From Scyliorhinus canicula (Eukaryota): a stretch of 64,000 nt of DNA. The stretch covers positions 98,153,121 to 98,217,120 of the forward strand of contig NC_052149.1 of NCBI RefSeq assembly GCF_902713615.1, read 5' to 3'. The notes below the pieces were generated by a model. The model was not told the DNA's origin. It saw only the letters and a program-made list of their open reading frames with translations, and ran no database searches. A program made the position numbers and the translations under genes. Below are positions 4,101 to 57,726 of this stretch, one piece after another (within the stretch, counting starts at the first letter, position 1; each line of letters starts with the position of its first letter).

Positions 4101-6015
4101 TTGATTTGATTTTTGATTTGATTTATTATTGTCACATGTATTAGTATACAGTGAAAAGTATTGTTTCTTGCATGCTGTACAAACAATGCATACCGTACTT
4201 AGAGAAGGAAGGAGAGACTGCAGAATATAATGTTACAGTTATAGCAAGGTGTAGAGAAAAGATCAACTTAATACGAGGTAGGTCCATTCAAAAGTCTGAT
4301 GGCAGTAGGGAAGATGTTCTTGAGTCGGTTGGTACATGACCTCAAACTTTGGTATCTTTTTCCTGACGGAAGAAAGTGGAAGAGAGTATTTCCGGGGTGC
4401 GTGGGGTCCTTAATTATACTGGCTGCCTTTCTGAGGCAGCGGGAATTATAGATAGAGTCAATGGATGGGTGGCTGGTTTGTGTGATGGACTGGGCTACAT
4501 TCACGACCTTTTGTAGTTTCCTGCGGTCTTGGGCAGAGCAGGCTTCATACCAAGCTGTGATACAACCGGATAGAATGCTTTTTATGGTGCATCTATAGAA
4601 GTTGGTGAGAGTCACAGGTGACATGCCAAATTTCCTTAGTCTTCTGAGAAAGTAGAGTCGTTGGTGGGCATTCTTAACTATAGTGTCGGCATGGGGGGGA
4701 GCAGGGCAGGTTGTTGGTGATCTGGACACCTAAAAACCTGAAGCACTCGACCCTTTCTACTTTGTTCCCATTGATGTAGACAGGGGCATATTCTCCACTA
4801 CGCTTCCTGAAGTCAATGACAATCTCTCTTAAGGGTTCACCAGATTCTCTATCTTATTCCTGTACTCTGTCTCGTCATGGTTTGAAATCTGACCCACTAC
4901 TGTGATGTCATCAGCAAATTTGAAAATCGAGTTGGAGGGGAATTTGGCCACACAGTCATAGGTGTATAAGGAGTATAGTAGGGGGCTGAGGACACAGAAT
5001 TGTGAGGCTCCGGTGTGGAGGATTATCGTGGAGGAGGTGTTGTTGCCTATCTTTACTGATTGTGGCCTGTGGGTTAGAAAGTTCAGGATCCAGTCACAGA
5101 GGGAGGAGCCGAGGCCAGGCCACGGAGTTTGGAGATGGGTTTCGTAGGAATGATGGTGTTGAAGGCTGAGCTGTAGTCGATAAATAGGAGCCTGACATAG
5201 GTGTCTTTGTTACCTAGGTGTTCCAGGGTAGAATGCAGGGCAATGGAAATGGCGTCTGCTGTGGATCTGTTGCAGCGGTAGGTGATCTGTAGTGGGTCAA
5301 GGCAATCCGGGAGTTGATTCGTGCCGTGACTCACTTTTCATAGCACTTCATGATGATGGATGTCAGAGCCACTGGACGATAGTCATTAAGGCATGCTGCT
5401 TGGCTTTTTTGTGGTACAGGGATGATGGTCATCTTCTTGAAGCAGATAGGGACCTCAGATTGTTGTAAAGAGAGGTTGAAGATGTCTGCGAATACCCCGG
5501 CAGTTGATCCGCGCAAGACCTGAGTGCTCGTCCGGGTACCGTATCCGGACCAGTGGCTTTCTGTGGGTTGACCTTCGAGAAGGCTGCGCTGACGTCTGCA
5601 GTTGTGATCTCAGATACAAGTTCATCTGTGGCTTCTGGGGTGGAGGGCTCGCTCTCGCTGACCTCTTGTTCAAAGCGCGCATAGAATGCGTTGAGGTCAT
5701 CAGGGAGGGGTGCATTGGAGCTGGTGATTTTACATGCCTTCATCTTGCAGCCAGCTTTTGTCTTGCAGACATCACCATAGTCGGCAGGGGTCCATGTGGC
5801 TAGCCTGGGACTCGAGCTTGGTCTGGTACTGTCTTTTGGCACCTTTAATGGATTTCCTTAGATCATATCTGGCTTTCTTATATAGGTCAGGGTCACCTGA
5901 CTTAAAAGCCTCAGACCTAGACTGAAATTCAGGAAACAGTGGATATCCCTGTTCATCCAGGGTTTCCAGTTGGTAACACGCAGATTTGTTTCTTTGGCAC
6001 ACAGTCTTCTACACT
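4101..6015 (-). mobile_element. Rex1/Babar-like LINE, 5'-truncated, degenerate RT with an internal deletion
   Basis: ORF fragments [34 protein letters not shown] and QRLYFLRRLRKFG; (ATCAA)n tail at 4101-4125. Confidence 0.9.
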
Positions 6016-6998: not shown

Positions 6999-9350
6999 AT
7001 GGGCAGCGTCTGCACCCCACCGCCGTTCCGCATCACCGGAAACCTCGGGGCCAACTGAAAAATCTTCAAACAACGATTCCAGCTTTACCTTGAAGCCACA
7101 GATCTGGAAGCTGCTTCAGACGCCAGGAAGATCGCTCTCTTCCTCTCCAGGGCCGGGGACCACACCATCTACATCTTCAACTCTCTCACTTTTTCTGATG
7201 GTGAAGACAAATCAAAATTTAAGACGGTCCTCCTCAAATTTGACAGTCACTGCGACATCAAGGTGAATGAAAGTTTTGAGCGCTATGTCTTCCAACAGCA
7301 TTTGCAGGGTAAGGATGAACCTTTCCAATCCTTTCTCACCCACCTCCGCATCCTTGCGGAGTCCTGTAATTACGGATCCACCTCCGACTCCATGATACGC
7401 GACCAGATCGTTTTCGCCGTTCAGTCGGACTCCTTACGCCAGCAGCTCCTCAAGGTTAAGCAACTCACCCTTGCGATTGCCATCGAGACCTGCGTGCTGC
7501 ATGAACACGCCTCGAATCGGTATTCACACATCCAAGTGGCTGAAACGGGTACAAACAATCAAGCAACTCCAGGGTCTCAGCCTGGATGAGGACGGCCATT
7601 TTGCGTGCTTTTCACAGCCTCCCGCGCATGCGCGCACTGAACAAAGGGACGCCGACGACGACGATCGCACAGCGCAGGCACGCACCACATACGGCCGCAC
7701 CGCGCATACGCAGTGGCGCAACGAGCGTACTGATGCTACAATGTGCGGCAACTGTGGCTCTGCCCACTTAAAGCGGCAATGTCATGCAAAATCCCGACGC
7801 TGCCTACTACGTGGCAAACCTGGCCACTATGCTGGTTTATGCTGGTCTGCTCAGCCTGCCAACTCTCATCGCTCCAACCAGCTACGCAGGGATGTCCGCG
7901 CCATCCAACCCACGGTCACTGAACCCGATTCTGACCTGCTGTCTGACATTGACACCGAGGACCCAGAGGCACCTTTTCGAGTCGGTATCATTACCAAACA
8001 CAGAGTGCCCCCGAAGCAAAAAGTCCAGCCTCTACCGGTATACAGCATTGATCCGGACGATGAGTGGTGTGCCACCCTCACGGTCAACCGATCCCGAATC
8101 TGATTCCGCCTGGACACCGGCGCCTCCGCCAATCTCATTGCACGGTCTGACCTCCAGAGCCTCCGTGTCAAGCCAACCATCCTGCCATCAACCTGCCAGC
8201 TGTTAGATTATAATGGCAATCCTATTGCTGCCAGTGGCTCATGCCAACTTGAAGTGGCACACAGGTCACTTAAAGCCATCCTTCCCTTTGAAATAGTGGG
8301 ATCCTCTAAAGCCTCCCTGCTTGGTGCGCAGGCATGCAAGCTGTTGAACCTGGTCCAGAGGGTTCACTTCCTGTCACCAGCTGATGTGTCTGCCTCTCAG
8401 GACACTGATTTTAGGGCGCAGCTCGACGCTATTATTAACCAATACCACGATGTTTTCGAGGTCATGGGCACGCTCCTGTACAATTACAAGATCTTATTGA
8501 AACCTAATGCCATGCCTGTGATGCACGCACCTCGCAGAGTCCCAGCACCCCTTAAGGACCGCCTCAAGCAGCAGCTGCAGGACCTCCACGACCAAGGAGT
8601 GATTTCCAGAGTCACGGAACCGACCGACTGGGTCAGTTCCATGGTATGAGGGCAGCACGGTGGCGCAGTGGGTTAGCCCTGCCGCCTCACGGCGCCGAGG
8701 TCCCAGGTTCGATACCGGCTCTGGGTCACTGTCCGTGTGGAGTTTGCACAATCTCCCCGTGTCTGCGTGGGTTTCGCCCCCACAACCCAAAGATGTGCAG
8801 GGTAGGTGGATTGGCCACGCTAAATTGCCCCTTAATTGGAAAAAATTAATTGGGTACTCTAAATTTAAAAAAAAAAAAAGTTCCATGGTATGTGTAAAGA
8901 AACCTTCTGGCGAACTGAGAATATGCATTGATCCCAAGGACCTCAACCGCAATATTATGAGAGAGCACTATCCCATTCCCAAGCACGAAGAGCTCACCTG
9001 TGAGATGGCTCGCGCCAAGCCCTTTACCAAACTCGACACCTCAAAGGGATTCTGGCAGATCCAGCTCGACGAATCCAGCAGGAAACTCTGAACGTTTAAT
9101 ACCCCCTTTGGAAGATATTGCTACAACAGGATGCCGTTTGGGATCATCTCTGCATCAGAAGTGTTCCATAGGATTATGGAACAGATGATGGAAGGGATTG
9201 AAGGTGTTCGCATCTATGTGGCCGACATAATCATCTGGTGCACCACCCCGCAGGAGCACGTTAACCTCCTCCAGCGCATCTTCAGATGGATACATGAGCA
9301 TGGCCTCCGCCTCAACAGGGCCAAATGCTTCTTTGGTCAACCAGAATTTG
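6999..9350 (+). pseudogene. Gypsy gag-pol pseudogene
   Basis: GNLGAN*KIFKQRF; two CCHC-like knuckles (CGNCGSAHLKRQC, CLLRGKPGHYAGLC); protease FRLDTGASAN; RT LRICIDPKDLN, KLDTSKGFWQ, RMPFGI, YVADII. Stops and a SINE insertion interrupt it. Confidence 0.9.
8649..8878 (+). mobile_element. Short poly(A)-tailed V-SINE inserted in Gypsy RT
   Basis: tRNA head, V domain, A-tail; perfect 14-bp TSD AGTTCCATGGTATG (8635-8648 / 8879-8892). Confidence 0.9.
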
Positions 9351-10241
9351 TCGCCCACCTCAGAGACTAAATCTATGAACTTTTCGAATTTATGGACTCT
9401 CTGAATTGTTTTGTTGCTTTGTTTTATCGATCCACTGGTTTCTATATAATGTTGCTCTAGTTACTATTTTGTTGCATTCTGTTCATCTGCACTAGACACC
9501 TTCCCATGTAAATAGCTTAGGTTTTATGTACATAGTCTTGTAAATATGCCTTCACACTCCACAAGTAGGAACATTCTCACCACACATTATTTATTAACAC
9601 AACCATACATTTTTTTTTATAAAAGGGAGGATGTCATAATATACACATCAGTATAAATGGTGCAGACACACATAGCGAGGACCAGGATCCCTGGAATCGA
9701 GGAGGGGGAGCAAGGAGGTCAGTAATGCTCAGCACTTACCTCCAGGGTGCACAAGGACAGGTCAGCTGCTACCATGGAGCAGGGGGTTTGGGGAGGTGGT
9801 TGCCTTCAAGGGGGTTGGGGCTTGGCGAAGGGCTTGAGCTGGAGGGCTTCAGTTGGGGGGGGGGGTTTCTCTCATCTTCCTGTAGAACCTTTGAAGTATT
9901 TCATTTCGGGTCAATTTCAAAGCCCAGTCAGGGAGCAGTGGCTATTTTGCTGTTTGTCCACTTTAAAGGTCTGTGTTTTTGCTGGCATTCCATTGTATGC
10001 ACCATTACCAATTACAAGCACCAGGTCTGACAGCTGTTGCCTCAATCAAAGGAGCATTTCATATATTAATGCAGCACCTCATGCTCCATAAACTCTGAAA
10101 TGCTTCCTAGAATGTGCACCTGTTATGTCTAATCTCCTAAATTTTAGAAGAGGATTTTCCCTATCTAGCGTGAATTGCATGCCTTTCCTGGAACTAGTTT
10201 TCATCATTTAGATGGGCTCACTCAGAAATTAGACTACAAGG

Positions 10242-10525: not shown

Positions 10526-11600
10526 CAAGGGTTACCTCAATAAGGACCTTCTCACAGCCACTGTTATTCTCTACATGGGCACCAAAGAGCAGAGCACAAT
10601 TATCCACATGTTGCTGCCAATGGTCTGGCGGATCAGGGTTCCTGATTTGGGTGGGAGGGAGTCTAAAGACTGAAAGCTGCCAGGCAAAGAGACTACGGGC
10701 ACAGGAGATAGTGCTGGCAATGCGTGGCACGGAGGTCAACACTGCTGGGGTGATTATCCGAGTGGAGAGCCTGTTGCACAACATCAGCAGCACGAGTGGA
10801 GGTGCCCAAGGTGTGGCTCATTCAGTGATGTACATGGCTGAGCACCACGACTACATATCCCAGTTGTTGGGGGACGTGTCCCAGTCCCATGTCGACCTTG
10901 ATTAGAGGCGCTGCAGAGCATGTCCCAGTCACTGAGGACCATCGCCGAGGGCATTGACACCATGGTGTAGACAATGGGGAGCAACCAGGGCTGGCAGAGG
11001 CACATGACGGAGGGGCAACGGCGTATCTCGGAGTCAGCATTCGGAACAGGGCGGTAGAGCGAGGCATGTGCTGCTGGCAAGTGGGCTGGGGCCCTCTGAC
11101 ACCAGCACTCCCAGAAGATGCCCTCCAGGGACATCAAAGGCCAAGGCATGCAGTAAGCAGCAGGCTGCCTCAACTTCTGAGGATCCTGGGGATCCTGGGG
11201 ATACACCTAGGTGCAGCGGCTGAGCACGGAAGACTAAGCAGACAAAGGATCATTGAGAGGGCATGGGGGGGGGGGGATAGGAAGGTCAGGGGGGAGGGTG
11301 CGATGAGGGGGGGAGGGGTGGTGAAGGTGGGGCGGCATCATCGGGGACTGGGGCATTTGGGGACACATACAAATAGCATTAAAAATAAGTTGCACTCCAG
11401 TAATATGATGCTCTGTCAATTTCAACCGCAATGTGGGCGAGCACCAATCACCTGCCGCGGCCTCCCGGGCATGGACTCCTGTATGCTTCTTCACCACCCA
11501 CCTCACTTTCCCGCCCCGACCACATCCCCCCCCCCCCCCCCCCACCCCCTCCCGCCCCATCACCACAGGCACACCACGTGAAGGCAATAGGTGTGAGCGA

Positions 11601-11678
11601 GCAGGCTAGAGTCAAACTATGGCATAGATTGCGGAGCACTGGCGCCCAGCTCTCTATGGGTTATCATCACCACCCTGC
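11601..11678 (-). ncRNA. Box C/D-like RNA motif in Harbinger copy C (box D degenerate)
   Basis: GCAGGGTG GTGATGA [48 nt] TTGA CTCTAGCCTGC; alignable to 40600-40679 and 45120-45197. Confidence 0.5.
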
Positions 11679-12215
11679 CCTCGACAGTGGGGGGGGGGGG
11701 GGGGGGGGGTGAGGGAAGGGGCAGGGGAAGGGAGAGGGAGGAGGAGGAGGAAGGGAGAGGGTAGGAAGGAAGAAGGGGGAGGAGGGAGTGGGAGAAAGGA
11801 GGGGGGAAGGGATGGGGGTGAGGGGGTGGGATGGGGAAGACTGAGGGGTGCCCCATTAACTATTGCAAGCATTGCAACCATCCGGCAAATTTGGCACTGT
11901 TTCTCATTAGAATCAATCATGTTCCACAGGGCACTGGTGTTTGCCCCTTAACGGTCGGTGAATTTGTCCAGGTGCTGTGCCAGTTCTGTTGCCGTAGAAG
12001 TCCACAAATCCTGCCCTGGCGTCAACACTTTGGGATGGATTCTCTGATTTTGAGGCTTCTTTGATTTTGAGGCCAGGTCCAGAGCATGTGTCTATCATTA
12101 CGACCAAAACGTTGGCGCCGCCCCAGCACTGATGCTCCGCCTGGTGGGGGGCTAGCAGCCGCACCACGTAAAACCCCAGTGTTCCCTGCAGATACGGACG
12201 GAGAATCGATGAGGG

Positions 12216-38656: not shown

Positions 38657-40599
38657 CTCCTATAATATGCCCAATGAAGGAAGCTTTTGACAAGATTTAG
38701 GGTGCGATTTAATGGAAAAGGTTCTTAGTCTCATATCAGGCACGAATTCCTGGATCTTTCTCGATGGCCATATCAGTGAGGTCGCGACCGTATTAATGGC
38801 ACTTAGTGCAAAAAATTATTCCCACAAGGTTCAAGCCAGTATTGGCTCTTCCGCCAGCCTGATTCACTCACCACGCACATGGCAGTTCCTTGCTTTTAAA
38901 TCTCCCTCCGAACTCACTCCCAGTCAGCACATGAGCATGGCACCATGCAGACCTGCTCCAAGCTTTGGGGTTGCAAACCTTTCCATGCTGCTGGTGCTGT
39001 GGAGGAGAGCTGGAACATCTTATTCCTCCGAGCTGGTTGGAGGACCAGCAGCATAGCACCCAATGCCATCTGGGAGACAGTGCAACAGTCGTCAGTTTGC
39101 ACAACATGACCAGGAGGACCGCCATACAGTGCAAGAAGACCAACGATCTCTACTGGGCCGCAAGGGTAAGTTAACACCAGCCCCTGGCATCAGTGCCAAC
39201 TGCCACTTCTCCTGACCCTCGCCCCCCCCAACCACCCCACCACCACCAACAGGTCAGCAGTTGGCATCTCACATTCACCCAGATCCGATCTCTGCACTTT
39301 TGCCCCAGCACACCCTGGCACCCTCAGCACAACTCCTCCATGTTGAGATGCGATGCCTACACATACCACCTGCCATAGGCCCCATTGATTCACCAATGCC
39401 CCCTCTCTGTCCCCACAGGAGGTTAGCCCATAATAGGCATGGAAGGATCCAGATGGGCGGCGGAGTTCAAGACATCAGAGGCCAAACTCCCTATGAGGAA
39501 TGGGCTCTGGAGATCACAGAATTGGCCGAGGAGGGAGCAGTCACTGACAGCAAGGTTGGCCTGTGCTGCAGAGGTGAGGATCCATTGCCCCTTCACCCAA
39601 ATAACCTGCCTCAAGTGAATTGTTCATGTCATACAAAATGACCCTTCCCTCCCACTGACCACATGTGCCTTCTCTTGCAGGATCTCCACCTGATGAGGCT
39701 GGGCAGGGGTCCGTCCACCCGCTACCCAAGAGAACACCTTAGAGTACAGCTCCAAGGAAACCACCATCAAGGCATAACAGCTGTCATCCCCACCTTCCAC
39801 CAGCGCAGGGATACACACCTCAGTGGACGACACCAGTGGAAAGGCTTCTGTGGCACAAACTGGTGAGCACCCGACAGATGCTGATGCACATCAGGTGGAG
39901 GCGGGAACATCCAAGGGAGTCAGCAGTCGCAGGTTTGCTGGATCTCGGGACTCAGCTGAGTCTCATTCAGATGTCGAGCATCCGGGCAAGGTTATCTCGC
40001 AGCTGATGTAGATGCTTGGGCATGGCCATGAGTTTCAGGAGGGAATGTCAGCGACACTCTGGTGAGTGCATAGCCGATTGGAGGAGTCCCAAAGGTTACT
40101 GGCGCAAGAGATGGGGCTGGCAATGTATGGCACTGAGGCCAGCACTGCTAGACATAACAGGGTGGCACAGCGATGCCAGTGACACCAATAGGTTGTCCAG
40201 GGCCCTCTGGCTCTGGGCCCTTCAGAGGACATCAGTCAAAGGCATCAAAGGCCACATGGCGTGAGAATCAGCAGGCTGCCCCACCTCTGATGTGCATCCT
40301 GGGGACACATCTAGACCTAGCGACAGAGCACAGAAGATTAAGAAGATTGAGGACTACTGAGTGGGTACTGGAGGGCATCGAGGGGGAGGCTAGGGAGAGT
40401 GGAGGTTTCAAATGTTCACCATTAAACATCTAACACCTGATACATGTGAAGCCTTTGTCATGTTATTCTGCACAGTGGGCCTGCACCCCCCCCCTCCCCC
40501 CACTCCCTGTTGTCCTCCACTCCCTTCACCCCCTGTCACCCCAGACATAGTTGTCCGAGATCCAGTTCAGTGGATGGGTGTGAGTGCACTGTCAACAGA

Positions 40600-40679
40600 A
40601 AGACGGGAGTCAGACTTTGGCATAAATGGAGGAGTACCAAAGCTAACCACACAGCGAGTTATCATCACTCTCCTGCCTT
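40600..40679 (-). ncRNA. Box C/D (K-turn) snoRNA-like motif in Harbinger copy B
   Basis: AAGGCAGGAG A GTGATGA [48 nt] CTGA CTCCCGTCTT; canonical boxes and a 10-bp stem with one mismatch and one G-U pair, in K-turn register. Confidence 0.6.
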
Positions 40680-40931
40680 GGTTATGGACCCCCTGAAGTG
40701 CGGACACAGCCGCATTACCCTGGGGTTATGCTACACTGACCCTGGGAAGGTGGAACAGAGTAGTTGGGGAAGGTTGGGGGTTTATGGGAGGGTGGGGGAA
40801 TGGGGGGAGAGAGGATATGGGTGGGAAGGAGGGAAATGGGGTGGTGGGGTCAATGGGGGGGAGGGGGTCAATAGGCAAAGTTGAGGGGGTGAGTGGGGGG
40901 AAGGATGTGAGTTGATCGACAAAAATTTGCC

Positions 40932-41580: not shown

Positions 41581-42450
41581 GAATTGGAGAAGGAGCGAGG
41601 CCCACAAACAGTTAATGCTTCCACCCCGGGACCCTCAAATCCCCCCAGCCCCTTACGTCTGCCACCTTCTCTCAGAGTGACATCCACCAATCCAGTTGTG
41701 CTGGAGAACCCCGCTTTGCACACTCACCCATGCCTACAGCAGGAGCACCGAGACCCCAGATCCCTGCCGAGAACATCAGGGAGACCATGCTCAGGTACCC
41801 TCCCTGATTCACACACATCCTTTGGTCACGAGGATATCCCGAGTGCTGAAGCCCACCTTTTGAGTATCTGACTGTGAGCTGCTGCCTCTATCTTGCTGAC
41901 ACATCTAGGCTTCATGGAAAGTGTCCAGATCTCACCGTTTGATTGGAATGCTTTGCAATAAAACTTGTCTGAGACATGTACGTATACCCATGAGAATGCA
42001 CTTGGGAATATTTGGTTTAGTAAACTGTCAATAGTAACAAAGAATTGAAAATAAACTATGTAACATTCCACATATCACACTAACTATTAAACAACAAGGA
42101 AACATCACTGCTCCATATTGGTACCAATACAAAGCTATAACAGATCAGTTTCACAGAAAAAAACCAAATACCCAGTATCACATTCCATAGGTTCCTGTCG
42201 TAGAAATGGGGCGCGATTCTCCGCTCCCGCGCGGCATAGGGAAGGCCGTCGTGAACTCGGCCGAGTTTCACGACGGCTCGAAACGACCCTGTTCATGAGC
42301 AATTCAGGCCCTGGAAATGGGCTAGGAGCGGGGCCGCGGGAACCACGTGGGGGATGACGTCAGAAACCAGCGACGCCCGAATGACGACAGAATGACGGCG
42401 CTCCGCGTCGTAAAAAGGCGCGAGCGACGAGAACAAGTGAGGGGGAGAAG

Positions 42451-44829
42451 ATGACGGAGCCACGGAGGGCCGCCCCGAGGTTCAGTGAGACTGACCTCGA
42501 GACCCTCCTCGATGAGGTGGAGCAACGGAGGGGCATCATCTGCCCTAGCAAAGGGCATTGCCACCCTGCCAGCGTTGTGCGACGGGCCTGGCACGAGGTG
42601 GGCATGGCAGTGAGTGCTGTGGGGCAGACCCCTCGGTCTGGGGAGCAGTACCGGAAGAAGCTCCACGACCTCACCAGGGCTACCAGGGTAAGTGCCAAGA
42701 GGGTGCCCCCGGGTCACAACAATTCCCCCCCCCCGTGTCCCTCATCACCCACCTCCCCCCCCCCCCCCCGGGCACGAGGGGGAGGGGGGCGAGAGTGAGT
42801 GGAGAGTGGCTAACCAAGTTGTCACAGGCCCACATGAGCGCTGCGACCCTCTGGAGAGATGCCATGGTTTAGCTGCAACTTTCCCCCCAACCTGTGCCAA
42901 TATCTGAACGCCCTGATGATACCTGCCGAATTGTCATGATCTATCTATGCCCCCCCCAACAGGACAAGACTGCTCACAACAACCGGGAGCGCAACAGGAC
43001 TGGAGGGGGTTCACTCATTATGCACTCCCTGACCGTGTTTGAGCAGAGGGCACTGGACCTTGCTGAGGGATCTGCCACCCGGGAGTTCGCGCTATGCGAG
43101 GTTGGCGGTGCAGAACCAAGTGAGACAACCCTGCATGACAACCCCCCCCCCCCCCCCCCCCCCAGCCCTTCCTCTGTGCCCTCACACTCTGCCCACTGGA
43201 CCATCCATCCTCTCTCACCTCACACTCTGCCCACTGGACCATCCATCCTCTCTCCCCTCACACTCTGCTCACTGGACCATCCATCCTCTCTCCCCTCACA
43301 CTCAGCCCACTGGACCCCCCATCCTCTCTCCCCTCACACTCTGCCCACTGGACCATCTAACGACCGGCCGAGCGTGTCTAAATAACCACGTCTTATTCTG
43401 TTCCCTATGGCGTGCTGCCGAATATCCAGGGCCGTCTGCTGCCACACCCAGCTGAACATCCGCCGCCACCACCGCACCCAGGGCCGCACTCCAGAGGGTG
43501 GCAGGAGGTCAGCAAGGGGTGCCATCCTCCCAACCCGGGACTGTCGAGCAGGACGCACTCATGACAGCGACACAGTCAGCAGACTCACATGAGGGAGAAG
43601 CAGACATGGGCCGCGTGCGCCCTGCGGCCGGATATGAATGGGAGAATGACACTGCAGAGATTATGACGGACGAGGACCTTGAGATTGCGGCACTGCTATT
43701 TCCCACACCATCCACCATCCCAGAGACACTCACCTCGGTTGGGCAATTAAGTGATGAGGCTCCTGGGTCACAGTCTGGTGTGCACCACACAGCTGAGCCG
43801 GTACAGCAGGTGGAGGTCGGAGCAGCCGAGGGCCCGGACTGTCAGAGGGCAGCCCAGGCCCAGCATTCAGCTGGCTCCCAGACGTTTCCCGGGTTCCTGG
43901 ATTTACTTGACCCACCCGCAGAGCCGATGCATTTTGAAACCCAGGGACACAATGACGGGATGAGGGCCGTCTTCCAGCAGCTGCAGACGCAGTTAGAGGA
44001 GTCGAACCGCGTCCAGGAGCAGGGAGTGGTGCCGCTCATGGCAGCCACCCAGGCTGACACCGCACGGGTGGCGTCCGCGGTCGAGGCAATGGGTGAAACG
44101 GTTTCAGCCATGGGTCAGGTTCTGCAAGGAGTTGGACTTAATGTGCACGCGTCATCCCTGGCCCTGGAGAGGGCTGCCCTCTCACAGGCAGCAATGCGCC
44201 AGAGCCAGCATGACATTGCCGGCCCGCTACGGGCCCTGGCCGAGTCTCAGCAGGTCATGGCCCAGTCCCAGCAGTCAGTCGCCGAGAGCATCAACCGCAT
44301 GACGCACGTATGGATGGCGTCGTGCACTCACAGGTTGAGGTTGCACAGTCTCTGGTGGGAATGTTTCACTCCCTGGACTCCGTCTCTGCGAATGTTCGGA
44401 CCCTGGTCGATACCGTTGCAGGCCTCCAGGGCTGGAAGAGCCAGGTGTCGGTGGGGGCGAAGGGACCCGCTCGCACCTCCGTCCCACAGTGAGGCCCGGG
44501 GGCCACCGGGCTCCCCGAGGGAGGAGGAGGTTCTGGGACCCGTCCCATTAACTCCATCACGGGACGTCCCTGAACGCTTAGCCTCCCACCGTCCCATCCC
44601 TGGTGCATCGGGTGGGCAGCAGGCAGAGCAGGGTGGCACCGCGTCATCCGAAACGCCCGCGGAGCAGCCTGGCCCATCAAGGCCAGGTCGCCCCAGGAAA
44701 CGAGTGCCGACGGGGAGACATGTCGCAGGGGGTGATTCTCAGCAGTCCGCCTCCACTCCTCCTGCATCATCTGGGGATTCACTTAGACGGAGTGGTAGGG
44801 CCCGTAAGGCAACGAAGAGGGACACATAG
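42451..44829 (+). pseudogene. Harbinger Myb/SANT-like (trihelix) partner gene, 3 exons (42451-42687, 42963-43119, ~43409 or 43430-44829), ~600 aa with coiled coil and AT-hook; one in-frame TGA
   Basis: PRFSETDLETLLDEVEQRR...AWHEVG...RSGEQYRKKLHDL, donor AGG|gtaagt, acceptor cccaacag|DKTAHNNRERNRTGGG, phase-1 donor A|gtgaga. TGA at 43453-43455. RPGRPRKR at 44680-44703. ATTAAA at 44897-44902. Confidence 0.85.
43179..43357. repeat. 38-bp minisatellite (~4.7 copies) in Myb intron 2
   Basis: Unit ctcacactctgcccactggaccatccatcctctctccc starting at 43181, 43219, 43257, 43295 and 43333. Confidence 0.95.
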
Positions 44830-45119
44830 TAAGTTGGCACGGGTGAAGGGCACAGATTAGTTGTAGGGGCTAGGGCATCTGTACATAATGTTAACCATTA
44901 AACTCACTGTTGCACGTAACTTGTAAGACCGTGTGATTTCTCCGTTGCCACAGGAATCGTAAGGGTGACCGAGTGTCGCTGGGGTTGACGAGCGGTGAAA
45001 CTTCAGTGCCGGGTGTGCAGTCCCTTCCCCCCCACCCCCTCCCACAGCTACCACACGCGGGCACGTGGTGGAGTGTCCCTGACGAACTCAGCGACCACCG
45101 AGATGGATGGTTCAGCTAT

Positions 45120-45197
45120 TGCCATGAGTCAGACTTTGTCTAACGATTCTGAGCTCACAGCTCATCGCAGAGCGGGCTGTCATCATTCAACATGGCA
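45120..45197 (-). ncRNA. Box C/D (K-turn) snoRNA-like motif in Harbinger copy A
   Basis: TGCCATG TTGA ATGATGA [47 nt with GAGCT-gtg-AGCTC hairpin] CTGA CT CATGGCA. Box C at 45180-45186, box D at 45129-45132, perfect 7-bp terminal stem. Confidence 0.65.
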
Positions 45198-45222
45198 CTG
45201 ATCACACCCGCTGACACAGCCA

Positions 45223-46677
45223 TCAATGTTGTGCCATACCGTCTGGACCCAGTGATAAGGGTGATTTGGCACTGGAGCAGTGTCCGCAGAGCAGGGGGGG
45301 GGGGGGGGAGTTGTGTGCTGACCGTCTGCACGACTGGCGATGCAGGTGGTAGGTGGACCGTCGCACGCGGCGCGTGATTCTTGCTGCCATCAACGCGTCG
45401 CGTGCCCGCTGTCCTCGCGGGTACTGTCGTGCCGCCTCCTGGACATTACCAGCACCCGGGTCGTGTCTGCGTGCTGCGCCTGGCACACCTCCTCCAACCT
45501 CCTCCTCCACCTCCTCCTCCTCCTCCGTGTTGGCACCACTGCCACTTGCTTCTCCCTTCGACTCCTGCAGTAGGTCATCTCCCCTCTGCATTGCGATGTT
45601 GTGCAGCGCACAGCAGACCACTACAATGCGAGCGACCCTGTCGGGCTGGTACTGGAGGGCCCCTCCGGAGCGGTCCAGGCACCTGAATCGCATTTTCAGG
45701 AGACCAAAGCAGCGCTCCACCACACCCCAGGTTGCTGCATGGGCCTCATTGTAAAGTGTCTCCGCGTTGGTCTGAGGCCTCCGTAGGGGTGTCATCAGCC
45801 AAGACCTCAATGGATAACCCCTGTCACCCAGCAACCAGCGCCTCAGCCGGGGGGTCCGTCCCTGAAACGGAGCAGGGATGAACGACTGCGCAAGAATGTA
45901 CGCATCATGCACACTGCCAGGGAACCTAGCGCACGCGTGCATGATCTTCGTGTGGGGGTCGCATACCACCTGGATATTCATGGCTTATGTCCCCCTCCTG
46001 TTTGTGAACACTTCCCTGTTGCCTGCAGGCGGGCGCATGGGGATGTGAACACAATCAATGACCCCCTGGACCATCGGTATCCCGGCCACATTGGCATATG
46101 CACGGGCTCGTGCTTCTTGATTTGCTCGGTCCTCGGGAAAGGTAATGTAGCGATCGGCGATGGCATAGAGGGCGTCGGTCACATCCCGGATGCACCTGTG
46201 CACCAATGCCTGCGAGGTCCCGGAGAGGTCCCTGCTCGGAGACTGGAAGGAGCCAGTCGCATAAAAGTTAAGTGCCACCGTCACCTTGACGGCAACCGGG
46301 ATCGCGTGTCCTCCTCCCGTTCCACGTGGGGCGAGGTGCGCCACGAGGTGACAGATATGTGTCACCGTCTCTCTGCTCAACCGGAGTCTCCTCCTGCAGG
46401 TGATGTCCGGCATTGTCTGGAATGAGATCCGGGCACGGAAAACCCTAGGCCTCGGTCATCGCCTCTGGTGCCTTGGCTCCACCATCAATGTCTCCTCCTC
46501 CTCCTCCTCCTCACCCCAATGCTGCTCAATGACGGGCCACTCCGCGGCCATTCCCCCTGCTACCGCAGCTGGCCCTGCATCCATTGTGGGATGTCGCTGT
46601 GGACGCTGCTGGATCTCCAACTGCAGTGCAGCGGCCCCAACCACTGCGCTGAACATAGCCGTTCTGTTCGCATACAT
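45223..46677 (-). pseudogene. HARBI1-like DDE transposase, single frame with two nonsense codons
   Basis: ORFs 46677-46456, 46413-45985 and 45981-45223 are all in one frame, with stops TGA (46456-46458) and TAA (45985-45987). Catalytic motifs GVIDCVH, LLGDRGYP and VVERCFGLLKMRFRCL. Upstream ctaac...ctgtaag suggests a 5' UTR intron acceptor. Confidence 0.92.
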
Positions 46678-46989
46678 TCTGATAACTTACAGAAGGGTGG
46701 TGGGGGGCAGAGAAACGACATGTTAGATGGAGGTTATTCGACACCTCAGCAGCCGCCTGCCACGGGATACCTGTGTGTCCCGGTGGCTTGGTCGCGCTGC
46801 TGATACGCGGCCAGCCTAACCCCTGGTTACTTTCTGCGTCCAACAGGCAGTTAACAACGTTCTCCTCACTGGTGCGTCAGTGGGCTGTGGCTGTAAGCCA
46901 CAGGGCAACCAGCGGCCGTGTCCTCGTCAACGTCCTGCCATGGCAGGGCGGCTGACATGTTGCATCCGGGGGTGGACGACCCACTCCAC

Positions 46990-48508
46990 TCACTCCTTCT
47001 CTCCCTCCCCTCCACTACTCCCTCTCTCCCTCCCCCCCTCCCACTACTCCCTATCCCCCTCCCACTACTCCCTCTACCCCCTCCCACTACTCCCCCTCCC
47101 CCCTCCCACTACTCCCTCTCCCCCCTCCCACTTCTCCCTCTCTCTCCCCCTCCCACTTCTCCCTCCCCCCTCCCACTACTCCCTCCCTTCCCCCCTCCCA
47201 CTACTCCCTCCCTCTCCCACCTCCCACTTCTCCCTCCCTCTCCCCCTCCCACTTCTCCTCCCTCTCCCCCTCCCACTACTCCCTCTCCCCCCCTCCTACT
47301 ACTCCCTCTCCCCCTCCCACTACTCCCTCTCCTCCCCTCCCACTACTCCCTCTCCCCCCTCCCACTACTCCCTCTCCCCCCTCCCACTACTCCCTCTCCC
47401 CCTCCCACTTCTCCCTCCCTCTCCCCCTCCCACTTCTCCCTCCCCCCTCCCACTACTCCCTCCTTCCCCCCTCCCACTACTCCCTCCCTCTCCCACCTCC
47501 CACTTCTCCCTCCCTCTCCCCCTCCCACTTCTCCCTCCCTTTCCCCCTCCCACTACTCCCTCTCCCCCCTCCCACTACTCCCGCTCCCCCTCCCACTACT
47601 CCCTCTCTCCCTCCCACGTCTCCCCCCTCCCACTTCTCCCTCCCTCTCCCCCTCCCACTTCTCCCTCCCCTTTCCCCCTCCCACTTATCCCTCCTCTCCC
47701 CCTCCCACTTCTCCCCCTTCCCACTTCCCCCCCCTCTCCCCCCCACTTCTCCTTCCCTCTCCTCCATCCCACTTCTCCCCCCTCTCCCCCCCTCCCACTT
47801 CTCCCTCCCTCTCCCCCCTCCCACTTCTCCCTCCTTCTCCCCCTCCCACGTCTCCCCCCTCCCACTTCTCCCTCCCTCTCCCCCCCACTTCTCTCTCCCT
47901 CCCCCCCACTTCTCCCTCCCACTCCCCCCCTCCCACTTCTCTCTCCCTCTCCCCCTCCCACTTCTCCCTCCCTCTCCCCCTCCCACCTCTCCCCCCTCCC
48001 ACTTCTCCTCCCTCTCCCCCCTCCCACTTCTCCCTCCCTCTCCCCCTCCCACTTCTCCCCCTCCCACTTCTCTCTCCCTCTCCCCCCCACTTCTCCCTCC
48101 CTCTCCCCCCACTTCTCCCTCCCTCTCCCCCCCCACTTCTCCCTCCCTCTCCCCCCTCCCACTTCTCCCTCCCTCTCCCCCTCCCACTTCTCCCTCCCTC
48201 TCCCCCCTCCCACTTCTCCCCCCTCCCACTTCTCCCTCCCTCTCCCCCCACTTCTCCCTCCCTCCCCCTCCCACTTCTCCCCCCTCCCACTTCTCCCTCC
48301 CTCTCCCTCTCCCTCCCACTTCTCCCTCCCTCTCCCCCCTCCCACTTCTCCCTCCCTCTCCCCCCCCCCACTTCTCCCTCCCTCTCCCCTCCTCCCACTT
48401 CTCCCTCCCTCTCCCCCCTCCTACTTCTCCCTCCCTCTCCCCCCTCCCACTTCTCCCTCCCTCTCTCCCCCTTCCACTTCTCCCTCCCTCTCCCCCCTCC
48501 CACTTCTC
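46990..48508. repeat. ~1.5-kb polypyrimidine/polypurine minisatellite (variants of CCCACTTCTCCCTCCCTCTCCCCCT)
   Basis: Almost G-free plus strand with recurring CCCACT(A/T)CTCCC units, inside Harbinger copy A upstream of the transposase. Confidence 0.95.
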
Positions 48509-51080
48509 CGTGTTTCTGCGCGCGAAACCCGATGACAGAAATTTGGCCGGTTGGAGAATAGCGGGAGCGCGTCGGTCCGGCGTCGCGTGAAAATCTGGTG
48601 CAGCCCGCTATTCTCCCAACCGGCGTGACATCGGAGAATCGCGCCCATGATCTGTCCTTCATTGTGTGACGTGTCCCACGTATCAGCGCCATTCTCGTCC
48701 AGGAGCTGCAGCTGTGCAGGCCCTCCAACATGGCCCAATCTCACCGGAACCAAATCCTGGCATCCACATATTTCACTGGCACTCAAGGTGCAGTTGAACA
48801 TCCTTGACTTCCAGTGAGTTTAACCCGCGGTGATGTGCCAGTTACCTGCAGCACTCACCACACCAGCAATAAAAACAACATCAATCTGCAAGTGTTTCTT
48901 CAACGGCATCATCTAGCAACACATTTGGAACAATGTCGCACACCAAGTTGCACAGCATCTTCATGCTGAAAAATGGATTGCCTTCTGGACTCATATGTCA
49001 CCCTGAACCCGATGTTCCAGGACCCAGGCATCTCAGAAAAAAATGTCTTTCTTTCCGTCTACAGAAAAGAACGGAAACAGCAAAACCAGCCTCCAGGCAT
49101 TTGCAGCCACCAGCGGGAGCAAGCAGCAAACACAACCTGCAGCTGTGAAGTGCTCACATAACTAACAATACCAATTCCTTAATCGCAATAGCCTTCAACT
49201 GTACAGCTGGAGGCTGCTCACAGTCAAAGCGAGTTAAAGTGACCTTCAGCACATAACCAAGAACAGGGCTCTGTTCTGAAGTGTTTGGTAGGACAGACAG
49301 TCAGCAGCTGTAGTTGCCCCTATTTTCGGTATACACAATATTGGGGATGGATTGTAGGCCCTGTAGACATTATGCCCCACACTCCCCAGCCCAGTCCCCT
49401 GCCCAGGCCCACCACCGCTCCCCACCCCTCATCCCAGCAAGTATCCTAGCATCTTTCAAAAGCCCTCTTCAAACTTCCAGCAGCAATAAGTGAACAGTAA
49501 AGGTGAGTATGCCTTTAAATAAAGCTTGAAACCCTCAGCAACAAACTTGTTTATTCACAATCAGATAGGCATTGTTCAGAGAGAAAGGTTTCCGTACTAA
49601 TCAACCCTTTTAATGATCCTCCCTCCATTCCTGGCAGCCACTTCAAATCCGTTGCCATATCAAATGGAGTTCAAATTCTTTGCCAAGATGAAAGCTTGCA
49701 CTAAATTTCAGCTAACTTGGCACTTCAGCTAAAGACTCCACCTTGGCCACCTGGGATGTCCGTTAGTGCCAATAGAAGCCGCTGAAAATCAGCTCCTCAC
49801 CCACATCCATTTGAGGAAATTGTTCTCTTCCGATCCCACCCATTCCAAATTATGTTGTGGAGGTGCGTATTGTTAGAAACAACCTGGGTTACATAGGCTG
49901 TTCCAGACATCCTGAAAATTATACCTCAAACTGTTAGTTGATGTAAAAATCATAGAGCTTTAACCACTTCTGTTTGGTCAAGTTTGAATTAGTTAGCTCA
50001 TTTAATTAGGAGATTCAAATCCACTTAAAACACCCAATAACCAGTTCAAACAATGTTTTAATTGCTTTCAACAGTGCCCCTGCCACCGTGATTAGCCTGC
50101 TATGGAGATTTTATTCAGAATGGAAGCAGAATTTGGCACTAGGCATTAATGAGTATGGACAACTGATCCAACCGTAACAGAAGCTATCTGTTCATCTTGA
50201 CAAAACCTTTCTCCCATTGAAAAAAATAGCCTTTTAGCCACAAACGCTTAATAAAAAGAAATCATTCGTGCATTTTGTATTTCTGTCGTTTGGAGTCTTT
50301 CTGTTATCTTCGATTATATTGGCATAATTCATCTTTGTGGAAATGTTCCACCACACAGCTGCAACACATTAAGTAATCAAACAGGATAAGGACTGATTTT
50401 CTCATCTGAATTCAGTGCGATCAGTATGTTGAACATCTTTTGGAGACCTAGCATTTCTGTCATATCTGGTAATGAGTAAACAATACATTCCAGCTGTTGC
50501 GGGGATTAGCATACTCTGGAGGCGGCAAGGTTTCAGTGGAACCAGAAAAGGAAAACTTTTCTACATGTTCTGTAATTTAGGACTCTCTAAATTATTATTT
50601 GTCACATAATTTCAGTCTTTCTATCTTGTAAACCGGTGATAGACGTAGTTAGATCGAACTTTGCAATGAGAACCTTTATGTTGCAATAACTCAACCAAGG
50701 AGTAGATTCAACAATTCCAATCACAATATTTGGACTGTTGATTCAAGATATTTAATTTGAAATACAAATCCAAAAAAGGTTCAGAACCTGGATGTCACCT
50801 TCACATTTAAGCTTTTCAGAGAAGCTGATCCTTCGGAGTAAAAACAAATAATGGAAATACTAAAGGGAAAGACATTTTGAAAGGTAGGTTTTATTATTTT
50901 ATTGTAAAATGTGTATTTTTGTGTCGTTATGTTCTTATTTTCAGCATTGGAAATGCCAATGTCAAAGCAATAGCCAAAAGAGCTTTGACATTTTACTGAG
51001 CGAATTAATTGTTCCAGTTTCTGCTTTTTAATTGGAAGATTTCCCTCGGAGAGTTCTGATTTTTAAAAATTGTTTTATGA

Positions 51081-52140: not shown

Positions 52141-53847
52141 AGTTGGTGAGGGACCATCCCCTATTCTGTGGAAAGTGGGGTGATCTCCACGCACAGCGAC
52201 GGTGAAGATCGACACTGATGGGGTGGGGGTGGGGGGGGGGGGGGGGGGGAGAGAGGCGGGAGGGTGGAGAAGATGGTCAGGAAGTGAATATAACCGTGGG
52301 TTGACCCCAGTGAAATACACTAGGGGGAAGGGTGCACGTAGAAATAACAATACAGCGCATTGCAGGCCCTTCGACCATCCAAGCCTGCGCCGACCATGGT
52401 ACCTGCCTAAGCTGGAACCGTATATACATACGGTAGTGAATATAACAATTGCTCTGAGTAGTGGGGGTCAATCGTGGAGTTGTGTGGCAGGCACACAAAG
52501 TAGTATGGGTTGGTGGTCTGTTATCTCTGGAGGGGAAAGACGGCTCAGCGTGAGCACTGATGATGAAGGTGCTCTGAGATTCTGACTAGTGAGAGGCGAG
52601 GGACAGTTCGAATTGCAAATAGCATGCAGGGAGGAGAAGAAGGGATGGGGAGTCAAGGGTGAAACAACACATAAACAAAGAAGATGTGCGTGCGTGGAGC
52701 ACACATGATGGGGCAAGTTCCATCAGAAATCCTGTGCCATGCTTATTGGGAGGCATCAGATTGTCATCATTTGGATACCGTAGGATGTTTGTGCTCCACA
52801 AACCTCAAAACATTGCGCTCCGATCTCAACCAATTGGTGGTGGTCTCCTCGATGGCGGGGCGGGTCCCAGTCAGCCATGGCCGTTAGTGTCCAATGCACG
52901 TTGGCCTTCCCAAATGAGGAAACCGACATCACCTTAATTTCTGCAAGGTCTGGGCTCCAGCCCTTGTATATTTGCAAACTGCAGCCTGTCTGTGTCTCTG
53001 TGTTGACCAATTTCCTATCGATATGTGCAGGTGGCCATTTTGGATGCCCACATGTTGGCTGGGGGCTGCCGTGGGTGTGGCCCTGGGTGGTTCCCTGGAA
53101 GATGGCTGCCAGTTGTGTGAGGTATTCGATGCCGGGGGGGGGTCTGTGGCCGGGAGGGGTTGGGGGATGCGGAGGGGGGCACACCCATATGGCTGGTGCC
53201 ACTGTGTAGAACCAGGGGCCAAGGTGGGTGGTCAGTGGGTGCCCCAATCCCTCGGGGGCACCCCGGCTGCTTGACCCGCCCTCCCCTCGCTCCCCCTCCC
53301 CTCCCCTCGCCGCAGCCAGCAAAGCCGCTCTCCGGGCCAGCAGCCCGGGTTCCGACCACTCCAAACCTTAGCCAAGAGAAGGCTGTGCTGGGTTCGAACA
53401 TGTTTAGATGAAATGCGGAAAGGTGGGGGTTGAGGGAGTGGGGCTGGGGGGTGGGGGGGGGGGGATCATGTATGGTGACAGTGTGATAGAAGGAACGCAG
53501 ACATTAGGCGTCCGATAATAACAGAAACTATGCTTGGTCCCCCAGGACCTGGAGACAGCAGCCCCAGGATGTCACCCGGCAGATGGAGAAAGCACAACCA
53601 ATACTTGGTGGGATCATTCCTGGGATTGGGTCTCTGACCTTCAGAGACACCCCATTGTTTGACTCCGCCCTCACCTGGCTGTCATGCTGATCCCGTTTAA
53701 CTTGATCTACCTCATCATCCTCACGGTCCAATTCCGTAGGTGGACAGCAGAGATCATGGAGCGCCAGGACCTGGGATTCATGTTTACTGCATGGGCCCCT
53801 TTAATCCATCCAGACCAACGATGCCCGGGGACTCATACTTGTTTTCG

Positions 53848-55049: not shown

Positions 55050-55841
55050 ACTATGGTTTGGGAGGTATAACAGGGGTCGGGGGTGTGGGCTGCGGGGGGG
55101 TGTGGTGTCGGTGAGGGGGTTGGGGGGTGTGGGAAGTGTCCACACATGTGTCATGGGGATGCGCAACTAAGTAGGTCTCACTTGCTTGCCCGCCACCGAC
55201 TTCCACCTCAGTGATCTCCCTTTCCTCTGGACCGCCGACCACATCTAGTGCCCTCTGCTCGGGCACGGTGATGGGCCGCAGGTCTGGTGGTTCAACTCCG
55301 GTCATCTCCCGCTCCCGGCAGTTAAGCATGACCTTCTCCTGGGGGTGGGGGGGGATAGGGTATGGGTGTGTGTGTGTGGGGGTGGGGGGTTAGTGCCAGG
55401 GGCATGGAGCAGCCAACTCACCCTGGCTGATCTGAGGAGGTTGTGCAGTCTCTCCCGTGTGGATGACGTTGCCCACAGCACTGACTGCGTCTGCCACCTG
55501 CGCCCAAGCACGGTGAACGGCGGCGCCTGGTGGCTTTCCCCCCGGGTCAGGGTACAGGGCCGTCCGCCTCTCCCCCACGGCGTCCAGGAGGGTGTCCAGC
55601 TCAGCATTCCTGAAGGATTGTTAAGTGTGGCTGCGGCGTATGAGTCTCATATGCGCCAATCACGGACCTGGTGAATCCGCCGTCGTTCCGCAAGGAACCG
55701 GTTGTGTTCGACGTGGTGATGGTGCTAGCCCATTTAGAGTTGCTGAATCGGTGCACCTGTTGCACCATTTTTTCTGTCATAAAACACCACTGTTTCCATG
55801 CCGGCGTCTGCACTTAGTCCCAAAATCGGAGAATGCAGCCC
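55050..55841 (-). mobile_element. Harbinger left end with Myb exons 1-2 (remnant)
   Basis: TIR GGGCTGCATTCTCC ending at 55841; VHRAWAQVADAVSAVG and MLNCREREMTGVEPPDLRPITVPEQRALDVVGG. Confidence 0.75.
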
Positions 55842-56438: not shown

Positions 56439-57726
56439 GGGCGAAATTCTCCAGTTCGGAGACTAAGGGCGCAATCTAATGAAAGGTTTCCAAGTGGGGT
56501 AACGAGCGGGAATTGCTGAGTGCTTCCAAACAGCCGACTCAGCAAGACAGCTACCGCTATCTAATGCCAATTCGAGCTGGTAATGATGCCCTATGGGCTT
56601 CACGTCTGAAATAACTGTCCCACCGACTGATTCTCCTGGACCGCTCGCAGCAGCTCTCTGCTAACGAGACGGGAGCAATACTTAAACCGATCCTGCAGTG
56701 CAAACATCAAGCAGCATACAGTCATGCCACCGCACAGATCAGCTCCACAATTCGGAGATGCAGACCTGGCAAGACTGTTGGATGCATTGGAGTCAAGAAG
56801 CAATATTCTGTTCTCCCGAAGGGGTCAGAGAGTCAGCCAGAAGGCAGCCAGCACTGGAGGGAAGGCTCAACGACCTCCACTAGGCCATAGAGGTGAGTTG
56901 GCACCAGTCCCCTGGCACCGGTCCCATCTGCCACCGGTCCCATCTGCCACCCTCAGCTCCCCTGCCCCCCTCCGAAAACGCTGCGGTTGCACCCCTCCCC
57001 AAGACAATGCCATTTCTGTGCCCCAGCACACCCTGGCACCCACAAGCACACCCCACCATTCCCAGTGGCGGTGCCCACACCTGTCTCCCGCTATATCCCC
57101 TCCCCTCTCTCGGCGATGCATGAAGTGTGTGGCTCACGACGCCCTCTCTTTATTCCCGCAGAAGAAGTTGGCCCATAACAGGCGAAAAAGGGCCCAGACT
57201 GGCGCCGAGGTGCCAGATATCAGAGTCCTCAACCCCTATGGAGAATGGGCCCTGGAGGTTGCGGGGGTGGCCGAGGGCAGTGCGGTCACCGACATCGAGC
57301 TGGGCCTGTGCCAGAGAGGTGAGTATCTACCGGCCCCCACCCAGATGACCTGTCACATGTGAGTTGTTCATGCCAGAATAATGATCCATCACTCCCACTG
57401 ACTACATGTTCAATCTTCCACAGCACCTCCAGCGGATGGTGTCAACCCAACCGGGATGGCACCACTCCCCCCTCCCCGGCCTTCTAAGAGATCCAAGAGA
57501 ACACCTCGGAAGAGAGCTCCGAGGTTGCCACCAGAGGCGTCAGGGCTAACATCCGTGCTCTCCACCAGTGCAACGACACACCTCACTGGGCGAAAGTAGT
57601 GGACAGGCCTCTGGAGCACAATCTGATGAGCACTACACAGATGCTGATGCACACGAGGTGGAGGCAGAATGTCCAGGGGGGACAGCAGTCAGACGTCTGC
57701 TGGATCCCAGGCCCTGCTGGGTCCCG
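56439..57726 (+). mobile_element. Harbinger left end with Myb exons 1-3 (remnant)
   Basis: TIR GGGCGAAATTCTCC; MPPHRSAPQFGDADLARLLDALESR; cccgcag|KKLAHNRRKRAQTG; intron positions match copy A. Confidence 0.75.

Follow-up and report, generated by a model that had tools for sequence, protein, structure and literature searches.

Three copies of a Harbinger DNA transposon lie in the window, the whole stretch of 64,000 nucleotides that was analysed, and each of them carries a short block of related sequence between its transposase and Myb genes. Judged by its alignment, this block belongs to one Harbinger clade of the catshark type and is a genuine non-coding element under constraint, consisting of two segments of about 15 nt held at a fixed spacing. 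The single best reading of the element is a box C/D-type K-turn RNA, to which we assign a probability of about 0.35. The evidence is made up of motif matches and one clear stem, in three sequences from one genome that were picked from a very large scan.

The copies are referred to as A, B and C, and the features discussed in the text are collected in Table 1. A Harbinger gene pair had been recognized in the preliminary description from the DNA letters, and copy A does contain the domains of such a pair, DDE_Tnp_4 (PF13359) and Myb_DNA-bind_5 (PF13873). Copies B and C retain remnants of the transposase, on the same strand as in A. The closest proteins to the A transposase are annotated as 'HARBI1' and come from Scyliorhinus torazame, with 64–75% identity, followed by proteins from other sharks. 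The TAA at 45985–45987 is the single in-frame stop in an otherwise open transposase gene, and copy A is a recently inactivated copy. By homology to shark proteins (..GQRARDALMAARI..; ..GQRARDTLIAARF..), the C-terminus of the A transposase falls near 45370, and these shark C-termini thus place the element about 170 nt downstream of the end of the gene, in non-coding DNA.

Copies B and A are arranged head to tail in the same orientation, with the end of the B transposase abutting the start of the A Myb gene at about 42300; copy C lies 30 kb off and is oriented as A and B are. Two more Myb/SANT-like Harbinger partner genes are found at 55332–55614 (minus strand) and 56724–57362 (plus strand), with no transposase detectable nearby. 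Directly after transposon A, positions 46880–48560 form a long CT-rich low-complexity tract with 550-aa Pro/Ser/Leu ORFs in several frames. Upstream of copy C, at 8660–9370 on the plus strand, are reverse-transcriptase-like ORFs that represent a retroelement fragment.

Table 1. Positions in the window of the candidate element, of its host genes and of the sequences around it
Feature	Copy	Position	Strand	Remark
Harbinger transposase (DDE_Tnp_4)	A	45223-46677	-	PF13359, E 2e-30
252-aa DDE_Tnp_4 ORF	A	45223-45981	-	
In-frame TAA in transposase	A	45987-45985	-	replaces Tyr of conserved RKGTYS motif
Myb/SANT-like partner gene	A	42451-44829	+	Myb_DNA-bind_5, PF13873, E 1e-11
Myb_DNA-bind_5 ORF	A	42451-42798	+	
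443-aa ORF of Myb/SANT-like gene	A	43498-44829	+	
Element	A	45120-45197	-	box C/D-like candidate block
5' arm TGCCATG	A	45197-45191	-	TTGA next
Box C ATGATGA	A	45186-45180	-	47 nt to box D
Box D CTGA	A	45132-45129	-	CT next
3' arm CATGGCA	A	45126-45120	-	
Element	B	40600-40679	-	box C/D-like candidate block
Box C GTGATGA	B	40668-40662	-	48 nt to box D
Box D CTGA	B	40613-40610	-	
Element	C	11601-11678	-	box C/D-like candidate block
Box C GTGATGA	C	11670-11664	-	48 nt to TTGA
TTGA at box D position	C	11615-11612	-	non-canonical box D
Myb-gene poly(A)-signal block AATGTT[A/C]ACCATTAAAC	A	44887-44903	+	conserved 3' of Myb gene
Myb-gene poly(A)-signal block AATGTT[A/C]ACCATTAAAC	B	40411-40427	+	conserved 3' of Myb gene
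G15 run	A	45294-45308	+	C run upstream of element on transposase strand
G-rich tract (GGGAGGGGGTGGGGGGG)	A	45020-45046	-	downstream of element on transposase strand
Bracket runs	B	about 40745-40800 with 40490-40545		
Bracket runs	C	about 11680-11700 with 11530-11555		

The site of the element is equal in the three copies, between the convergent transposase and Myb genes, and it measures about 78 nt in total. Read on the transposase strand, A, B and C have RTGATGA, then 47, 48 and 48 nt respectively, then YTGA. Box C (RUGAUGA), near the 5' end, is matched at 7 of 7 positions in all three. Box D, near the 3' end, is CTGA in A and B, and the TTGA of copy C keeps the GA and permits a G.U pair. The box module had been described as common to the three copies; this stands for box C throughout and for CTGA in A and B, but has to be amended for C with its TTGA. 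In other respects the sequences, boxes and spacing are as first described, and the internal motifs YARCYCRY, 3' of box C, and GMCAWAGT, 5' of box D, are indeed shared by all three copies. The pattern TGATGA-N40-55-TGACTC is matched three times in the 64-kb window, against 0.19 matches expected, and all three matches are at the Harbinger element sites. A candidate fourth copy at 53653 (plus strand) is a chance match, as box C is missing and the orientation is wrong.

How much weight the resemblance can bear depends on how the copies diverged. In a tree of the transposase core, A, B and C fall in one clade with Scyliorhinus sequences (support 0.95), separate from the Heptranchias and Heterodontus clades, and B and C are on long branches. 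That these two are neutrally decayed copies is ruled out by a dN/dS of 0.29 together with saturated dS: the transposase codons of A and C give pS 0.58, pN 0.26, dS 1.12 and dN/dS 0.29, and those of A and B give pS 0.63, pN 0.31, dS 1.38 and dN/dS 0.29. A ratio this low with near-saturated synonymous sites means that most of the divergence among the copies arose under selection, and on the codon comparison A, B and C are mostly old selected lineages.

The element can nevertheless be aligned among the three over about 75 bases with a single 1-nt gap and 51–64% identity, whereas the remaining intergenic DNA beside it is hardly alignable. Conservation relative to the flanks, a check proposed with the preliminary description, is thereby borne out. 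Set against a neutral identity of about 0.4, the pairwise identities are 46/75 for A and B (binomial p 1.6e-5), 49/76 for B and C (p 1.4e-5) and 38/75 for A and C (p 0.08); since 51–64% exceeds the roughly 40% that is neutral, the element is under constraint. This constraint is concentrated in the two blocks of about 15 nt, box C with YARCYC and GMCAWAGT with YTGA and CTC. Pairwise identity is 6–7/7 in box C, 4–5/8 in the 8 nt after it, 6–7/8 in the 8 nt before box D, 3–4/4 in box D itself and 3/3 in the CTC that follows. The interior, at 42–56%, is near neutral with its length kept at 31/32 nt, and both arms are neutral (1–3 of 6–8). Invariant columns form two runs of six, one at box C and one at box D/CTC (p 0.01 versus random placement). 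Such a profile, with the boxes and the segment before box D kept, the arms free and the length of the interior kept, would be the one expected of a box C/D RNA.

A short protein-coding exon would be another source of constraint. In B and C two frames of the plus strand are free of stops, one of them a candidate with the reading V[RK]LWH..RST..YHH.PAL; the other candidate is a tail on the minus strand, DD[SN][PS]LC followed by a stop, which comes after an acceptor-like site made of a C run and AG. The pN/pS values go down to 0.56, and a pyrimidine run with AG lies upstream of the element on both strands. Against coding, all six frames look alike (pN/pS 0.56–0.86), the candidate frames are broken in copy A by a 1-nt deletion and by stop codons, and conservation sits at the two ends of the element rather than being spread codon-wise. 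Homologous transposases stop short of the element, no splice joint in RNA contigs or reads reaches it, and the ORF of A has no resembling protein among 5.8 billion. A coding exon is rejected on two of these grounds, that no frame has a coding signature and that the A ORF has no homologue, and we consider it very improbable.

The boxes of a C/D RNA are expected to be closed by a stem, and the preliminary description held that the closing stems differ between copies but still pair. This is upheld for the 7-bp stem of A, where complementarity of the arms within flanks of 18–19 nt has p 0.0055 versus shuffles, but not for B (p 0.11) or C (p 0.15), where it is at chance level; Fisher's combination of the three values, done by hand, gives about 0.005. 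The arms of B and C are purine-rich and pyrimidine-rich, and their pairing is indistinguishable from chance for such arms. Duplex energies of the arms on the minus versus the plus strand are -13.9 on both for A, -12.2 versus -10.4 for B and -16.5 versus -12.7 for C; arm pairing slightly favours the transposase strand. Copy A is the only place in the 64 kb where RTGATGA..CTGA occurs with a stem of at least 5 bp, and by chance 0.017 candidates with a 7-bp stem would be expected in 64 kb.

When the pairs between boxes C and D are read by hand they are G.A, A.G, U.U, G-C (G.U in C), A-U and C-G (U.G in B and C), and on this reading a six-tier non-canonical K-turn stem can be formed in A, B and C. 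The surroundings of this stem vary. In copy B the geometry is that of a canonical K-turn, with GGAG/CUCC adjoining the boxes and AGU as the 3-nt bulge. In copy A there is one G-C pair by the bulge, then a mismatch and a bulge, then the 7 bp, and a competing 7-bp hairpin covers box D. In copy C, with UUGA, the K-turn geometry is poor and the arms pair solely in a shifted register. The motifs, their order, the size and the predicted six-tier K-turn stem fit a box C/D reading.

Folding statistics are less favourable. The z-scores of the single-sequence folds (-1.1, -1.95 and -0.8 for A, B and C) are unremarkable, and the RNAalifold consensus of -6.2 kcal/mol is no better than that of column-shuffled alignments (z +0.45, p 0.65). 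Counts of pairs and of covariation are circular, because the structure was derived from the same three sequences and the consensus does not improve on shuffles. Stem covariation and consensus structure, which had been put forward as a test, are therefore not significant on three sequences. C/D snoRNAs are known to fold weakly, and so these negative statistics weaken the C/D claim but do not refute it.

Much the same observations bear on the idea that the resemblance is due to chance, the block being kept for another reason, or partly through slow decay of CpG-free motifs, and its C/D look being meaningless. There are three sequences only, the pairing of the B and C arms is at chance level and the consensus structure is not significant; between 0.017 and 0.3 motif-plus-stem candidates are expected per 64-kb window and very many windows were scanned; and other Harbinger lineages are without the element. 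We regard chance as unlikely, as identity of the element is well above the level of synonymous sites at dS above 1, the two boxes are exactly where the invariant columns are concentrated and the 47/48/48 spacing is preserved.

The main rival to an RNA is an element that works at the level of DNA, with two protein-binding sites of about 13–15 bp lying about 48 bp apart. Such sites would serve as an enhancer, would terminate transcription or insulate the convergent genes from each other, or would be used by the transposon's own Myb protein or transposase. One point in favour is the sequence TGACTC, which is invariant in all three copies although the first base of CUGA varies. The invariant CTC 3' of box D has no conserved pairing partner in A, B and C; the CTC, and hence the invariant TGACTC, is unneeded by the RNA model and is at least equally in keeping with sequence-specific recognition of DNA. 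TGACTC(A) presumably resembles a half-site of the AP-1/GCN4 type, and AGTCTGACT is a near-palindrome. An interior that is near neutral in sequence yet preserved in length would also suit a pair of binding sites, as would the lack of structural support from the alifold shuffles and the presence on both strands of C/G runs that flank the element and put a G-rich tract past each gene. On the other side, neither motif recurs beyond chance elsewhere in the Harbinger copies, for example near their ends, and two sites on DNA would predict neither the perfect 7-bp inverted repeat of A nor the exact order and spacing of RUGAUGA and CUGA. A DNA-level role is a serious competitor but, on balance, an improbable one.

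The C/G runs deserve separate description. On the transposase strand of A, B and C, the element is preceded by a C run and followed by a G-rich tract, so that transcription from either direction encounters a G-rich tract past its gene. The bracketing C and G runs are able to pair as a long hairpin. The bracket may be a pause or termination device, or it may be merely the result of simple-repeat growth.

Signals for polyadenylation differ between the two strands. The Myb strand has ATTAAA at 44897 (A), 40421 (B) and 11378 (C), 180–225 nt before the element. A search of the transposase strand for 16 variants of the poly(A) hexamer, over about 620–650 nt downstream of the element, found none in A, B or C; the sole hexamer match on that strand is CATAAA in B, 186 nt upstream of the 3' end of the element, and neither AATAAA nor ATTAAA occurs on the transposase strand of transposon A across 4.6 kb. 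At 59% GC only about 0.5 hexamers are expected per strand, and so the absence of hexamers is not significant on its own.

Between 22 and 41% of sampled words from 44830–45400 are contained in 14 runs labelled 'RNA?' and in four of unknown type. Contigs from two runs, placed on 42300–46800, span the element, for example 45058–45207 (one mismatch) and 44955–45229. Their summed depth at the element, about 160–260, is ordinary, bins across the whole Harbinger ranging from 8 to 1040, and the contigs show no enrichment over the element compared with the rest of Harbinger copy A. In two oligo-dT read sets sparse cover runs through the element, with no end pile-up or poly(A) junctions reported; such oligo-dT/poly(A) libraries, of uncalibrated strandedness, are unable to reveal a 78-nt non-polyadenylated RNA. 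In one contig from an RNA run, 42954 is followed by 45140, with 2185 nt missing and 26 other letters in between; the breakpoint falls inside the element, and the contig probably stems from an internally deleted copy at another genomic locus.

These data also bear on a 3'-end or transcription element of a kind other than C/D, which together with the C/G bracket would stop convergent transcripts from overlapping and whose C/D look would be incidental. Its position would be apt, past the Myb ATTAAA on one side and past the transposase stop on the other, with G-rich tracts downstream in either direction, no poly(A) hexamer downstream on the transposase strand and a read depth that crosses the element without a peak. 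Yet no read ends or poly(A) junctions are reported at the element, the missing hexamers are in line with their low expected number, and the conserved motifs match no known 3'-end signal. We judge this explanation quite unlikely.

Returning to the box C/D reading, the Rfam search proposed with the preliminary description did not favour it, the elements of A, B and C having no matches to any family of Rfam 15 at gathering thresholds. With relaxed thresholds the best match was of copy A to sR12, a generic model of archaeal C/D RNAs, which scored 16.2 bits where 38 bits is the cutoff. A captured known snoRNA is rejected, since no Rfam family matches. There is no conserved pair of C'/D' boxes in A, B and C, and A alone has weak look-alikes (CUGC and GAUGAG). 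No guide targets for the element were found within the 64-kb window.

The preliminary description spoke of Harbinger transposons in general, and in this it went too far. By pattern search, by eye and by nhmmer, the element was not found in five Harbinger copies of Heptranchias perlo (L003-L006), in a whale-shark HARBI1-like locus (L001) or in a two-gene Harbinger of a teleost (L002). Being missing from all of these Harbinger loci, it is a lineage-specific feature and not a general one. A scan of metagenomes with the strict element pattern gave no matches, and the relaxed pattern gave two, with no Harbinger protein nearby, which are taken as chance.

A homologue in Heptranchias was considered and dismissed, as local alignments of the intergenic DNA to A and B are not significant and nhmmer found nothing. 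The Heptranchias stretch GGCAGTGGTGATGAG resembles copy C with p 0.03, uncorrected. At 5990–6030 of L003, and at the equivalent places of L004 and L005, a conserved GGCAGTGGTGATGAGAATC directly adjoins the ATTAAA of the Myb gene on the reverse strand; its likeness to the 5' arm and box C of B and C has p 0.03, uncorrected, and no box D half stands at the right distance.

If the box C/D reading is right, the element would act as RNA on the transposase-sense strand, most likely within the 3' UTR of the transcript from the transposase gene. Pairing of box C (RUGAUGA) with box D (YUGA) would proceed through tandem sheared G.A/A.G, then U.U, G-C, A-U and C-G, and the flanking arms would close the K-turn fold. 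The K-turn could then be a platform for SNU13/15.5K and possibly for NOP58, NOP56 and fibrillarin, with a protected 3' end or retention of the transposase transcript as possible outcomes. Alternatively, an orphan snoRNA-like RNA of about 78 nt might be released from a copy in a transcribed intron. The motifs, the constraint, the ability to pair and a transposase strand without a poly(A) signal are what is observed here; from this we infer an RNA that folds in the manner described and binds snoRNP proteins, and an effect of that binding.

The preliminary description had gone on to a three-part system of transposase, Myb partner and C/D RNA. A constrained non-coding element, its C/D-like profile and its K-turn-capable boxes survive from that proposal; an Rfam match, C'/D' boxes and a significant structure do not accompany them. 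The roles suggested for the RNA (capping or stabilising the transcript, a guide snoRNA, an RNA of the transpososome) are speculation. The wider proposition that one vertebrate Harbinger lineage encodes a K-turn C/D RNA, which recruits host snoRNP proteins and serves the element, is one we hold only tentatively and with the odds against it. That Harbinger RNA might create or shield the 3' end of transposase transcripts devoid of poly(A) signals, or might be released as an orphan snoRNA-like RNP.

Were a working C/D-type RNA to be confirmed, it would be a case of a eukaryotic cut-and-paste transposon borrowing the snoRNP machinery, and would offer a way for snoRNA-like genes to multiply across a genome. 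Should the element prove to be a DNA site or a terminator, it would still be a rare mapped and constrained non-coding element in an animal DNA transposon, of interest to specialists only. Our literature search agrees with the earlier statement that no RNA component has been described for PIF/Harbinger elements: it found no paper that ties them to snoRNAs or K-turns and no RNA partner for their DDE transposases.

Among known systems, the box C/D snoRNAs, which form K-turn RNPs with SNU13/15.5K, NOP56, NOP58 and fibrillarin, are the obvious comparison. The element is like them in having RUGAUGA at the 5' side and, in A and B, CUGA at the 3' side of about 78 nt, terminal arms whose complementarity is clear in A, a conserved 8-mer at the guide position before box D and a variable interior. 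It is unlike them in matching no Rfam family, in being without C'/D' boxes and in having UUGA in one copy; furthermore, it belongs to the 3' intergenic part of a DNA transposon rather than to the intron of a host gene. SECIS elements and other K-turns of 3' UTRs share the UGA/GA core of tandem sheared pairs and the location in a 3' UTR. A SECIS is rejected here, since the only internal stop of the A transposase is TAA in place of Tyr, there is no in-frame UGA, and no SECIS family of Rfam is matched.

SnoRNA-like sequences in mobile DNA are also known in another form, the snoRNA retroposons (snoRTs, including the snoRNA-RTE fusions of platypus), in which a retrocopy of a host snoRNA is carried by a retroelement or fused to one. 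They share with the element a snoRNA-like sequence that multiplies within mobile DNA; in contrast to them, the element is internal to a two-gene, cut-and-paste Harbinger, is under selection and resembles no known host snoRNA. In sno-lncRNAs, SPA RNAs and hybrid mRNA-snoRNA transcripts, all nuclear and mostly non-coding, the ends are protected by an snoRNP. They would serve as the model should the C/D fold shield the 3' end of a transposase-strand transcript lacking a poly(A) signal, with the difference that no 3' end is seen at the element in oligo-dT reads.

The question is topical in view of the bridge RNAs and omega RNAs of other mobile elements and of the proposed connection of IS110 to Nop5 and the C/D snoRNA machinery (PMC11213020). 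The bridge RNA of IS110 and the omega RNA of TnpB/Fanzor would be parallels to a Harbinger RNA, as conserved non-coding RNAs encoded beside the transposase gene of a mobile element; they differ in that they direct a dedicated protein in recombining or cutting DNA.
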